From contig NC_042999.1 of the NCBI RefSeq assembly GCF_006345805.1, positions 46,252,001 to 46,316,000 of the forward strand: a stretch of DNA of 64,000 nt, written 5' to 3'. This stretch comes from Octopus sinensis (Eukaryota). The notes below the pieces were generated by a model. It was given only the letters and a program-made list of their open reading frames with translations. It searched no databases and was not told the origin of the DNA. A program made the position numbers and the translations under genes. Positions 3,398 to 21,500 of this stretch are shown here, in pieces. The first letter of the stretch is position 1. Every line of letters begins with the position of its first letter.

Positions 3398-3547
3398 GTT
3401 ATTCAGAAGAAACTACTGTTTGCATTGGGCAGTGCTGTTACAAAAGATTTGATTAACAACACAATCTATAAGAAACACTTCTTGGAGAATTTTGATTTTG
3501 CTACTCTTGAAAATGAGATGAATTGGCATCATAATGAACCAGAACAG
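3398..3547 (+). CDS. GH10 exon 1 ([14 protein letters not shown]...[21 protein letters not shown])
   Basis: ttttag acceptor, gtaggt donor, phase 0-0; matches GH10 F-x-x-A-T-x-E-N-x-M-K-W-x-x-x-E-P motif. Confidence 0.88.
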
Positions 3548-6500
3548 GTAGGTTTGCACCACAATTTTATAATTTGTTTTTTCATTTTTGACCTATGTAC
3601 AACCCATACATACCATACATACATACATACATACAAAATACATAATACATGTGTGTGTATATATATATATATATATATATATATATATATATATATATAA
3701 TATATTATATATACATATATATTAATAGTTATCGCCACGCTGATATGGCAGTTCAGAAATATAGGACGAATGCTGCCGTTGATTAGCTCTAAGAGGCCAT
3801 CGCCTCCAGCTAGCTATGTGATACACGAACCTGTCTCCATTATAACCTTCGAATAGGGGAAATCACTTTCAGTTTCACTTGCCTGAATATAGGTTCCACA
3901 AAAGTTTGCAATTTACACGCACCCACACATACACACACACACACAAATCACGCACACGCACACACATTTATGTATGTATGTATGTATGTATGTATGTATG
4001 TATGTATGTATGTATGTATGTATATATATATATACATACATACTTACATACATACATACGTATATATATATATAATATATATATATATATATTATATACA
4101 TAGGGTAATAAATTTTTACAAATTTCACTGCCAGTGGCTTAGCATGTATAAAAAGTCAATAGATGACATATTATTCAATATAAAATACTGTACATTTAAA
4201 CACCAAGAGAAATTACCTATAACAGGCAATTTCTACACGCTAGGAAACAGTCAAAACGACCGAAAAACCACAAAATTCAAGCAATTTCAAAGGAATGAAA
4301 AAGTAAAACCATTTTACCTTGTTTTTACGGTTATATCTATAGGTTTCGATTTTTTTAGTAAATAAGATAATTTACTAGGCAAATCCTCTTCAGTAACCGA
4401 GCTATCCAAGACTAACTTATAATTATGAGACCAATAGCACGTGTCTCATCTTTATCTGTTATAATTTTTTCAAAATCCATTAAGCAAGCGCAGTTTCAGT
4501 CGACAGAAAATGAAAAAGTGCCGAAACGAACTTTGGAAGGCTAATATCGATACTTAGATATCTATATAGGGTAATAAAGTTTTACAAATTTCTCTACCAG
4601 TAGCCTAGCATGCATAAAATTCAATAGACGACATATTATTCAATATAAAATAGTGTACATTTAAACACAAAGAGAAATTACCTATAACAGGCAATTTCTA
4701 TACGCTAGAAGTCAAAACGACCGAAATGCCAGAAAATTTAAGCAATAAAAATTTGACCTTGTTTGCCTATAGATATAACCGAAAAAAACAAAATAAAAGT
4801 AGTTTATATATATATATATATACATGTTTAAATTTTTAGTTAAATATATACTATAAGAGTATTACATACTCAATTTACAGTGAGTGCTCTTTTGTATCAA
4901 AGTATTAATACTATTAAAGTATTTATACATTTAATACGAGCGATTATATATAGTATATAATATATTGTGCCATAATATCAGGAAATTAATATAAGAAAAA
5001 TTCTTCAGAAAGATATATGCCTGTGTAGAATAATTCTTGTATTAAAATTATAAATATATATAAAAAATATCTGTAAATATGTTTAAGTATAAATATATAA
5101 TAATAAACATGACAGTTTAAATTTTAATAGCTTAATAGCGATCGTTTCGCAAAAGTATTGTCTCTATAACGGAATCCTATATTGATAAACATTTATAGAC
5201 AATACTTCTGCTCCTCAGAGATATAAAATGTGAAGACTGCACATGGAGACATGATCAATGGTTTCATTTTGTTGTTTACACACACGACATGTTAGACTAC
5301 TGCTGTTCATTAATATGTTGGCTTGGTAGTTCTTTGTAGGTAGGCATTGATCTATCATCATCATCATCATCATCATCATCATCATCATCATCATCCTTAT
5401 TATTATTATCATTATTATTATTATTATTATGATTATTATTATTATTCAGTAGTCTTATTTTAATCAGGTGCTTCACTGCACTACCGAGCGCAGCTGTGTG
5501 TGCCTTGAGTATGTGCTGCAGTTTGTTGTGATCTTCTTATTGTAACTGTATTGAAAGTATTTTACGTAAGATGTGTGCGGTGCCTAGTAGTACTATTTTC
5601 TGTATGATATATATATTTGTTAGTCCCGGTGTTGTCTGAATATTTTTTTATCATACCTAATGTGCCTATTATGATAGGAATTGTTTCTGTTTTTGGACTC
5701 CACATTCGAGTTACCTTTATTTCCAGGTTTTTGTATTTTAAAAGTTTCTCCATTTTAGAGAAAGGTTGTCAACTGTAGATTAGAAAGCATTTTTCCTGAT
5801 GATCTCTGACAACGATATCCGGCCTATTGGCCTTAATTTCTCTATCTGTGTGTATTGGCATATCCTATAGTATTGCTGTTTTCACATTTTCTGTGACCTC
5901 TTCTTGCGTGTGACCATACCGTCTTTTTTCTGTTGTTATTCCAGAATGTTGGCATAGCTTCCAGTGTATATAGGTCCCAACTCTGTCGTGTCTGTGCATA
6001 TATTTCTTCTTAGCCAGCACTGAGCAGCCTATTATTATTATTATTATTATTATTATTATTATTATTATTATTATTATATTATTATTATTATGCTAGTAAA
6101 TGCTAATTTAATTTGCAGGAATGTTATCATGAGGTTTTATGACAACAAAAAAAAAATCTCCTGAATTCTCAAGAATTCTCAGGATTCTTTTAGAATAAAA
6201 GATGATAATATACTACAAATCGACAAAGCGAATCTTAATTTCCATTTTCTCTCAGTCTTTTAGGTATTATTTTGTTAGTTGCTCCAAGTGCTTCAATTAA
6301 CGCACAACCTCTGATTCGTATTCATATCACTTTTCTGTCACTTTTCTGCCACACATTCAGTTAACATCCCTATGTACCTTTTAGCTATGCAGCAATGCCT
6401 AAGCTTATACTCGTTTTGTGCTAGCTTGCTACACTCACTCAAGAGTTTATTATTGTTGCTGTTGTTGTTGTTATCATTATCATTATCATTATTATTATTA

Positions 6501-18500: not shown

Positions 18501-21500
18501 AGGCACGTCTGGATGAATTATGGCAGCTGAAAATACCAATTTGGCTAACGGAAGTCGATATCATTGATAGAATACCCGCATCAAGAGCAGAGAAACTGGA
18601 ATACGTTCTAAGAACTGGTTTCAGCCATCCAGGAGTTGAAGGAATAATTTTATGGGGATTTTGGGCGGGAAACCATTGGGCTGGAGAAAGAGCTTCGCTT
18701 TGGGACAAGAATTGGCGTGTGAGTAATCGATTACTTAAATTTCAAATAATAAGTAGAAGCAAATACAGATATTTGCGTACATATCGTATGAATAAGCCCT
18801 TTTCAATTTAACAAACAAGAAAGAAGTTGATAAATATGTGTTGTTGATTGCGTGTAGGCGTTTCACTTTGTCATCGGTTAGAGTTTCTCGCATGATGCAA
18901 TCTTCCAGCGGACGTTAAATTTGAACGGCCGATTCACTCTTTTGTAATATCCAAGTAAAAAATTGTAAGACCTATATCTGGAAAACGAAAGATAAAAGGA
19001 ATAATCTGAAGAATTACAGAGACAAACCTGAACTTAAAAACAACATTTGGTAATAAATCAAAACTTCGTGGTACGAACTACATTGTAATCCTTGAGAACA
19101 ACGGTAACAACAACAATCATAATATCAAAGCAAATAATTTCTACCTGCAGACATACACCCAAATTCGCCTTTATGAAATTTAAAAGGTATGCATTTCTGA
19201 TGCATTATAATTCTTAACATCAAAGAACATATGAGCTTGTAGAAATATGGAGAACCATTTAAACTCTTTGACTGTTACCATCATTTGTAATTTACGGGTT
19301 AATCATTTAGAATCTGTATTTCTGTTTACGCTCATACGCTAAGCATTATGTCCGGCGTGCTAACGTGTTTTCCAGCTTGCCGCCTTAATATGCTATATAA
19401 ATAAAGTACTTTTCCGCAATTCAGCGATAGTATAGTTTTTTTTCTCTCGATAAAACTGTATTTTATTGGATTATTATAGATTATGTCCTTTTAAGTTCCC
19501 AGGTATATTGATTCTTTTTCTGGATAAAAATGGATTAGATGTGCCATGTATGCTAGACGTTGAAAATATTCCCATTAGAGCCTAATTATGCCACTTCGAT
19601 AGACGTCTTCTATAAACTAAACATACCTGTGGATTTTGCGGGGAAATGTGCTCAAGCAGTCGGTGTAGAATTTCTAACGTATATTAGGTTTTAAATAAGG
19701 AAATTGCATTTTTTGTGTGTTTGATGTTTACGATTAACAATTGTATTTAAACGCTATATTTGAACTTCAGATAAACGATGCAGGGATTCGGTTGCTTTCT
19801 CTAAAAGAAGAGTGGAAAACAAAACGCGTGTGGGACGGAGTTAATTCTCATCAGCGTTACCATTTCCGTGGATATCATGGTAGCTATGTCGTTCGCATTC
19901 AGTCAGGCAATGAAACAAAGGAAGCTAAGTTTGAAATAGTACCCGGAGATGGACGGCAAACAGTGAAGATAGATTTCTCAGGTAAGTTTAAAGTTTCACC
20001 TACTCAGCCTTTCCTCACCACACACACAATAAACATCGAGATCAAATTGTCTATTGTAATCTGTGAAAAGTAGCATGGTTGGTTTGTGTGGTTTTAGAAG
20101 TTTACCGCATTCAAAATTTAACAGCCAAAAAAAAGGGAAAAAAAAAAGCATTTAAAAGCGGTAAAGTAGGTAAGGCGTTCACTTGACCACTTTGTGGCTT
20201 CAGGTTTGGTCCATTTCCGAGGTACCATTGGCAAGTAATTGTTTTTCTGCTGTGGCCTTGTAGTTTTGGGTCGACCAACGTTTTGTGAGGGGATTTTTGG
20301 TAGATGGAAACTGTACAGAAGCTTCTGGTATATTTACACAAATACGTATATACATATGCATGTATGTACGTATTGAAAAAAAGTACACACGCAGATACTC
20401 ACACACATAGATGACTCACTCTTTATGACCCCTTATATGTGTGTGTATGTGTGTGTGCGTGTGCGTATGTGAGCGTGTGTGTGCGTGTGTGAGCGTGTGT
20501 GTATGTATTATGTATGTGTGTATGTATGTATGTATGTATGTATGTATGTATGTATGTATGTATGTATGTATGTATGCGTGCATGCATATATGTGTGTGTA
20601 GTGTCTAGGTCTGCATGTTTACGTCTGTTTGAGCACCTGAAAACCTGTTTTCTTTTTTTATATCGTATCAACTTGTGTAACATGTCAATTCGCCAAATAA
20701 AGACCGATAAAATTAGTATGATTAATACGATCAACTAAAACCTTTCAAGTCGTTGCTCCGGCATGGTCGCTGTCCAATGAATGAAGTCAGTAAAATAGCA
20801 AGCAAAATATTATTTCTAGAAATGGCTCTGGTTACTAATGCATAAAAACAGTATATAATTGTTTGAATGAGAGTAACTGCTTAATTGTTTGTCCATCTAG
20901 AAATGGCAGTTAAATTCCCTTTCTATCACACCTTACCATCTTAGAAAACAACGCGTTGAATGTGTTTCTGCGTTCCCTGAATACAGGTTATAGATATCAC
21001 GGGAATGTCTAATTATATCGACCCCAGTGCGTAACTGGTACTTAATTTATCGACCCCGAAAAGATGAAAGGCAAATTTGGCCTCGACGGAATTTGAACAC
21101 AGAATGTCTAATTTGCTACAGAGAAGAGAACATCATTCTCTGGAACAGTTTTTACTATAGATAACGAAAATGAACTCCATTTTTCATGGAATTACTCCAG
21201 AGTTTCGTAAAATGGGCCGTCACTAAACGGTATGTTTTTGTTAGAAAGTGGGTAATTTTCTGTGAAAATAACATTTTCTTCCTAGAATTAAAAGGAGTCT
21301 TCTGCAAAATGGGCTGTTATTAATAGTAAATACATTATCTGCGTCTTTTATTAAAGGAAGAATATCTATTTTTTAGTACAATATTTATGTTTCCTTCTAT
21401 GTACAGCATCAGGTCTATCTCTCTGAAGAAACCAGCAGACGTCAGCAAGCATGGCGGGACTCCATTTTCCCTTATATCGAGTTTCCATTTGACCTGTCTT

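Follow-up and report, generated by a model that had tools for sequence, protein, structure and literature searches.

The locus considered here encodes a relative of the xylanases of glycoside hydrolase family GH10, in which conserved residues contact the sugar bound in the glycone subsites. The asparagine preceding the acid/base glutamate (Asn126 in Cex of Cellulomonas fimi, or Asn127) forms through its Nδ2 atom a hydrogen bond with the C2 hydroxyl of the −1 sugar that is regarded as stabilizing the transition state, and the Asn-Glu pair is conserved across clan GH-A (PMC8056907). XynA of Bacillus sp. is an active xylanase: probes of xylobiose configuration label its nucleophile, and the xylobiosyl moiety is contacted by Lys100 of its ENxxK motif (PMC13444322). 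Xylanase activity has been measured for plant enzymes that associate a CBM4_9 carbohydrate-binding module with a GH10 domain, maize WI5 among them (PMC7587005). In molluscs, 2-13 GH10 were counted in herbivorous species as compared to a single one in Octopus bimaculoides (Wang et al. 2020, PMC7560691). We report here on the GH10 gene LOC115209445 of Octopus sinensis, most of which is contained in a stretch of 64,000 nucleotides (nt) of contig NC_042999.1 (positions 46,252,001 to 46,316,000, forward strand), hereafter the window. Judged from the sequences of its relatives, its product keeps the catalytic apparatus of the family and harbors, among the residues expected to contact the glycone, a change without precedent, a second that is rare, and a third that is an ordinary variant.

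By sequence and by fold, the octopus protein is unambiguously a GH10. The Pfam profile of the family (PF00331, cut-off 22.1 bits) yields scores of 96.3-112 bits (E=2.7e-27 to 4.3e-32). An AlphaFold2 model based on 45 sequences exhibits the expected (β/α)8 barrel with a predicted local distance difference test score (pLDDT) of 94.6 and a predicted template modelling score (pTM) of 0.91. The top 50 matches of this model among Protein Data Bank (PDB) entries, returned by Foldseek, are all GH10 or xylanase-family structures, the best being 7D88 (TMq 0.86, root-mean-square deviation 1.2 Å). A BLASTP alignment with Cex equates N42 with K47, H123 with N126, E124 with E127, E194 with Q203, H196 with H205, and E226 with E233. 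The numbering K47/N126/Q203 had been given in an earlier note on this DNA, made from the letters alone, and is right according to the BLASTP result; the Cex sequence used is identical to PDB 1EXP chain A over residues 1-312. In the model, H123-E124 are located at the end of strand β4, E194 in β6, and E226 in β7.

The search for relatives was exhaustive over 1.84 billion representative proteins, and 190 sequences, comprising the best 150 representatives and word-index matches, were aligned to the octopus sequence. The 185 non-octopod members of this set span bacteria, plants, cnidarians, bryozoans, and molluscs. The acid/base E124 and the nucleophile E226, matching E127 and E233 of Cex, form the retaining pair of clan GH-A; both columns hold Glu in 188 of the 190 aligned relatives and are invariant in alignment A1. 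Also kept are the RGH, NDY, and LWGFW motifs, the His partner of the nucleophile, and residues E38, N39, H75, W79, N160, H196, and W260, the equivalents of Cex E43/N44, H80, W84, N169, H205, and W273.

Against this canonical background, the octopus motifs read ENEMNW, WDVNHE, and GAEGH in place of those with Lys, Asn, and Gln, respectively. Each variant codon is a single base away from the canonical one (AAT vs AAA/AAG, CAC vs AAC, GAG vs CAG), as the earlier note had observed. That note took the three changes as equivalent, which the alignment does not bear out. At the position preceding the acid/base Glu, Asn is found in 185 of 185 non-octopod relatives and His in none. Among the 18 columns that are at least 95% conserved outside octopods, the octopus departs at this one only; the observation is more than chance. 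When the 61 columns conserved at 80% or more are considered, it departs at seven (F10L, K42N, N123H, G136Q, P153K, Q194E, and F316Y). The Lys to Asn change is shared with one of the 185 relatives, an outlier with a degenerate motif; the position holds Lys in ~85% of relatives and Gln in a sub-clade of 18. Neither of these two sites conforms to the canonical signature. Conversely, 21-22 of the non-octopod relatives, all flagged plant GH10 among them, have Glu in place of Gln, and Gln is therefore not strictly defining for the GH10 xylanase signature. By membership in the plant clade, Glu at this position looks compatible with normal function; that the assayed plant enzymes themselves possess this Glu would likewise follow from their clade. 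The Gln to Glu change should hence no longer be counted as a mark of altered chemistry.

The substitutions are shared by octopods. O. bimaculoides possesses ENEMNW, WDVNHE, and GAEGH, and Argonauta hians all three substitutions together with both catalytic Glu, while the O. vulgaris orthologue, a partial model that covers the GAEGH site only, confirms the Glu. Argonauta encodes all three residues with the alternative synonymous codons (AAC/CAT/GAA vs AAT/CAC/GAG in O. sinensis). Common to several species and encoded by different synonymous codons, the three residues are therefore neither errors nor private mutations. Between O. sinensis and O. bimaculoides, the 332 GH10 codons compared display 30 synonymous and 13 nonsynonymous differences (dS 0.163, dN 0.017, dN/dS 0.10) and no stops; the WSC part of the gene, described below, exhibits a dN/dS of 0.17. 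Over 351 ungapped codons, O. sinensis and Argonauta share 79% amino-acid identity; their divergence is given as raw proportions of synonymous (pS 0.77) and nonsynonymous (pN 0.12) differences, the synonymous sites being saturated and a Jukes-Cantor dS not computable. On these comparisons, the three residues are held through synonymous turnover, the His predates the Octopus-Argonauta split, and the variant is lineage-specific and maintained by purifying selection.

Among the circumstances that, according to the earlier note, would speak against its interpretation are orthologues with the canonical residues, and substitutions common in normal xylanases. The orthologues dispel the first; the second applies to the Glu and to neither the His (0 of 185) nor the Asn (1 of 185). 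What stands of that interpretation is that the changes are real, lineage-specific, and selected, and what falls is the reading of Gln to Glu as altered chemistry. Its description as an active enzyme fits, as far as sequence comparison goes, a dN/dS of 0.10 and otherwise intact catalytic machinery.

The best-supported explanation is an altered recognition of O2/O3 at the −1 subsite as compared to canonical xylanases. The octopod protein would assemble a signal peptide, a CBM4_9, the GH10 barrel, a β-sandwich, and five WSC domains, and is probably secreted. Its retaining machinery is intact, with the acid/base Glu after β4, the nucleophile Glu in β7, the His partner, NDY, and the Trp platform, while the residues reading the C2 and C3 hydroxyls of the −1 sugar have been remodelled in octopods: the O2-bonding Asn became His, the glycone-contacting Lys became Asn, and the neighbouring Gln became Glu. 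The CBM and WSC modules would hold the enzyme on a polysaccharide. An active retaining glycanase with changed recognition is suggested because the catalytic apparatus is whole and only the glycone-reading residues are changed. Catalytic activity, altered specificity, and secretion are what we infer from these features, and we consider it somewhat more probable than the contrary that the protein is a catalytically competent β-glycanase whose substrate preference or kinetics are unlike those of a canonical endo-1,4-β-xylanase. A pairing of His123 with Glu194 that offsets the charge of the lost Lys is plausible.

Several points weigh against this explanation. His may replace Asn as a hydrogen-bond donor without any change of specificity, and the Glu is, as seen above, an ordinary variant. 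Purifying selection would equally keep a non-catalytic glycan binder. All orthologues found are octopods; no squid, cuttlefish, or nautilus orthologue surfaced in two protein searches, which leaves them not found rather than shown absent. A literature search found no paper on this protein, and nothing usable on the roles of Cex Lys47 and Gln203.

A bolder version of the explanation, which we put forward tentatively and consider rather unlikely, is that the octopod GH10 has left xylan and cleaves another polymer, to whose −1 sugar the pocket residues are adapted. Candidates are an amino-sugar glycan of crustacean prey or microbes, and a β-1,3-linked or mixed-linkage glycan. The net shift of the pocket from positive to neutral or negative would go along with such a change, and the acquired WSC array would supply targeting. 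The opposite possibility, an ordinary endo-1,4-β-xylanase acting on algal or ingested plant xylan, in which the changes are tolerated and compensate each other, appears rather unlikely. The remaining subsite and catalytic residues are indeed canonical, XynA, the nearest relative of solved structure, is a true xylanase, and His shares with Asn the ability to donate a hydrogen bond. Furthermore, Gln to Glu coexists with canonical motifs across the plant clade, xylanase activity has been measured for CBM4_9-GH10 enzymes of plants (PMC7587005), and the residue before the acid/base varies between clan GH-A families: a GH26 β-1,3-xylanase has Tyr142-Glu143 and hence no Asn at this place, an analogy drawn from a different sequence family (PMC7563424). 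Set against this, the Asn is found in 100% of the 185 relatives, an indication that its replacement is non-neutral for xylan hydrolysis, and two independent glycone-contacting residues are altered in one lineage. Octopods are, moreover, carnivorous, and in O. bimaculoides GH10 is contracted to one copy (PMC7560691), which makes selection by xylan in the diet improbable. To note, GH26 mannanases may have a His-Glu pair at this place; a literature search provided nothing usable on His211-Glu212 of GH26 Man26A.

It is similarly doubtful that the protein is a dead or nearly dead GH10 retained as a lectin-like module, recognizing for example microbes or the surfaces of prey. The protein is rich in binding modules, the selection detected here does not separate binding from catalysis, and the hydrogen bond between the Asn and O2, absent in its usual form, is described as catalytically important (PMC8056907). 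Yet the catalytic Glu pair, the His, NDY, and the Trp are retained between Octopus and Argonauta despite saturated synonymous sites, and the substitutions tend to preserve the capacity for hydrogen bonding rather than to destroy it. Enzyme relatives without catalysis have in most cases lost residues of this kind.

Finally, sequencing or assembly errors, or a pseudogene decaying since herbivorous ancestors, could be evoked: annotation splits the gene, the RefSeq coding sequence begins at an internal Met, and the variant codons are one base off. The substitutions, however, occur in separate assemblies of different species, stops and frameshifts are absent from four octopod assemblies, dN/dS is 0.10, and the split in O. 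bimaculoides is accounted for by an assembly gap. Error, private mutation, and decay are thereby ruled out for practical purposes (intact frames, shared residues, dN/dS, and synonymous codons), and we give them hardly any credence.

A natural GH10 devoid of the conserved Asn and under purifying selection represents a ready-made experiment on the O2 hydrogen bond and on the role of the His. It also raises the biological question of the function of a carnivore's single surviving "xylanase", and of the reason for its gain of five WSC domains. Should the specificity prove to be shifted, a heavily used family of industrial enzymes would acquire a new activity; if another polymer is cleaved, GH10 would include a new substrate specificity, arisen in an animal lineage.

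The gene is encoded on the forward strand, and its product matches at 100% the RefSeq protein XP_036356851.1 (P0040), labelled "uncharacterized protein LOC115209445 isoform X2". Looking up the exact sequences of P0035 and P0040 gave no match. The gene model was built from scratch: tblastn with distant homologues provided six exons, and a profile hidden Markov model (HMM) the seventh. These seven exons lie within 3398-19981, all bounded by AG/GT (GT-AG introns), and assemble 351 codons without stop or frameshift. The first (3398-3547) encodes VIQKK... and holds the AAT of the Lys to Asn change (3521-3523); AG/GT borders and frame support it. By comparison with Argonauta, in which the corresponding exon is also 150 nt long, it is the third exon of the gene, and it displays 96.7% identity with O. 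bimaculoides. The second (6539-6594), of 56 nt, was predicted from the phase mismatch of the first two exons identified and placed by the HMM (profile positions 226-243), with AG/GT borders and a fitting phase. It is also present in the RefSeq protein and in the Argonauta protein, and a 56-nt exon exists in Littorina too. The third (7605-7742) carries RGH at 7615 and is supported by the spliced frame and the RefSeq mapping. It is followed by the exon of WDVNHE (11038-11209), comprising the His codon CAC (11060-11062), the acid/base Glu codon GAA (11063-11065), and NDY at 11171, and by that of GAEGH (14045-14155), with the Glu codon GAG (14108-14110) and the His equivalent to Cex H205 at 14114. 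The sixth exon (18503-18718) holds the nucleophile Glu codon GAA (18551-18553) within WLTEVDI and LWGFW at 18650. The seventh (19771-19981) encodes the β-sandwich that follows the barrel, aligns to the C-terminal region of XynA, and ends with the donor CAG/GTAAGT. All codons cited in the earlier note (3521, 11060, 11063, 14108, and 18551) and its RGH, NDY, and LWGFW motifs read as it had given them.

From the Met of ENEMNW on, the spliced frame is exactly that of XP_036356851.1, whose RefSeq coding sequence starts at 3518. Mapping this protein back onto the window returned the same GH10 exons and ten more, up to 48370, and a TAA stop was read directly at 48371-48373. The first of the ten, obtained from the RefSeq mapping, is a 60-nt linker exon (23460-23519) that is skipped in the Argonauta model. 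The other nine (28747-48370, exact mapping of XP_036356851.1) encode linkers and five WSC domains: 28747-29072, 31077-31299, 32276-32447, 32650-32783, 34875-35147, 37700-37843, 38394-38565, 41662-41783, and 48090-48370. RefSeq isoforms X1 and X2 differ by one Glu (TLEGTY vs TLGTY) at the acceptor of exon 34875-35147, which is consistent with splicing at either of two acceptors separated by 3 nt; the existence of the pair hints at transcript evidence for the WSC part. The extent given in the earlier note, 3509-18553, covers about a third of the gene, which starts upstream of the window and continues through the five WSC domains to 48370; the 56-nt exon had passed unnoticed.

The N-terminal part is missing from the O. 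sinensis RefSeq coding sequence. In O. bimaculoides, the annotation assigns it to a gene of its own, LOC106882323, in which a hydrophobic N-terminus resembling a signal peptide is followed by a CBM_4_9 domain and then by the ENEMNW exon. It is located 3.7 kb upstream, on the same strand, of LOC106882324, which comprises the remainder of the GH10 and the WSC domains. The CBM_4_9 profile (PF02018, cut-off 25.9 bits) matches the O. bimaculoides N-terminal piece with 29.2 bits and is also listed for Argonauta. Signal peptide, CBM, and 37-nt exons were searched in positions 1-3397 of the window and were not found; we conclude that the first two exons of the gene lie upstream of the window. The O. 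bimaculoides gene is split in two because a run of Ns in the assembly spans the 56-nt exon, the alignment picking up just downstream; the places concerned are 7098-7817 and 8342-9294 of L001 (from O. bimaculoides CM046603.1) and 6539-6594 of the window. A loss of this exon in O. bimaculoides, considered when blastn returned no match, was rejected, as the exon sits in the N-gap. In Argonauta hians, a single model of 970 amino acids (P0196) encompasses CBM_4_9, GH10, and WSC, and the GH10 exon sizes are those of the window (150, 56, 138, 172, 111, 216, and 211 nt).

The five WSC stretches (PF01822, E=2.1e-91) are located in P0040 downstream of the GH10 and β-sandwich domains. The donor at the end of the β-sandwich exon is kept in three octopods, while the sequence beyond harbors indels and reads through into unrelated peptides; the sequence past 19981 therefore behaves as an intron. 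From there the Octopus gene splices on to the 60-nt exon at 23460, whereas other molluscs use a stop codon. An annotation artefact joining GH10 and WSC was judged unlikely on the conserved donor, the non-conserved read-through, and the models of three species that join the parts, and we conclude that both belong to one gene. In the searches made here, this combination was seen in octopod proteins only; some insects pair WSC with GH16. Current annotations ("uncharacterized protein", "endo-1,4-beta-xylanase", two genes) are incomplete, or else probably misleading.

The window is AT-rich and repeat-rich animal DNA, with long microsatellites in many introns. Several exons are flanked by runs of the (TA)n and (CATA)n types, and the intron that follows the GAEGH exon includes an (AAT/ATT)n microsatellite of ~600 nt (14700-15360). 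The intron upstream of the window's first GH10 exon contains an open reading frame (ORF) of 309 amino acids with a GIY-YIG nuclease domain (1612-2538, forward strand, Pfam E=5.5e-6), which looks like a remnant of a transposable element, possibly Penelope-like. Between the GAEGH and nucleophile exons, a reverse-transcriptase ORF (16330-17484, reverse strand, RVT_1 E=1.2e-16) coincides with a local GC peak of 0.47 and is an insertion of the long interspersed nuclear element type. A dispersed repeat resembling short interspersed nuclear elements has the 23-nt core CGACCCCAGTGCGTAACTGGTAC, present in 14 copies on both strands where none is expected (9631, 21019, 22339, 22555, 22955, 29263, 35236, 40491, 40674, 50765, 53219, 59514, 62154, and 63259), and its translations recur in the ORF lists. 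ARAGORN predicts a tRNA-Ser(GGA) of 71 nt (33107-33177, forward strand) in an intron of the WSC region; serine tRNAs are longer as a rule, and the prediction therefore probably marks a tRNA-derived repeat or a pseudogene. Downstream of the gene, two near-identical ORF-bearing copies (51087-51515 and 53541-53963, reverse strand), ~2.45 kb apart and both with a Tyr/Asp-rich low-complexity stretch, indicate a local tandem duplication.

As to the origin of the gene, the best non-octopod matches are bacterial-looking (40-41% identity) and outrank those of other molluscs (30-32%). An independent horizontal acquisition, which this ranking could suggest, was rejected: across the catalytic domain, exon sizes and phases agree with those of the GH10 gene of the gastropod Littorina saxatilis (56, 138, 172, and 111 nt). 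Because its intron positions match those of a gastropod GH10, the octopod gene, on gene structure, descends vertically from the molluscan GH10 family and has evolved fast. The CBM4_9-GH10 proteins of other animals (Littorina saxatilis, Mizuhopecten yessoensis, Haliotis rubra, the bryozoan Watersipora, and the sea anemone Actinostola) exhibit the same order of CBM4_9, GH10, and β-sandwich at 30-40% identity but, unlike the octopus protein, carry the canonical Lys, Asn, and Gln and no WSC repeats. Those of Littorina and Mizuhopecten stop after the β-sandwich, while that of Haliotis carries other C-terminal domains.

Among solved structures, the best match is the thermostable XynA of Bacillus sp. 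(7D88/7D89/9RHV), which possesses N- and C-terminal extensions (E=1.8e-76, 37% identity). The alignment extends through the C-terminal β-sandwich and the catalytic pair E182/E280 matches, but XynA has no WSC and its motifs are canonical (ENEAKW, WDVNNE, GVQGH) where the octopus has Asn, His, and Glu. Cex (CfXyn10A) is more distant, with 24% identity; it shares the fold and the catalytic pair, and all three of its residues are canonical. The plant GH10 proteins ("endo-1,4-beta-xylanase 5-like"; CBM4_9-GH10 of the AtXyn1/maize WI5 type) display 35-37% identity with the octopus protein. They resemble it by the Glu at the Gln position (GLEGH/GLESH) and, for several of them, by the nucleophile motif WLTEVDI, and they differ from it by having kept the Lys and the Asn and by the absence of WSC domains.

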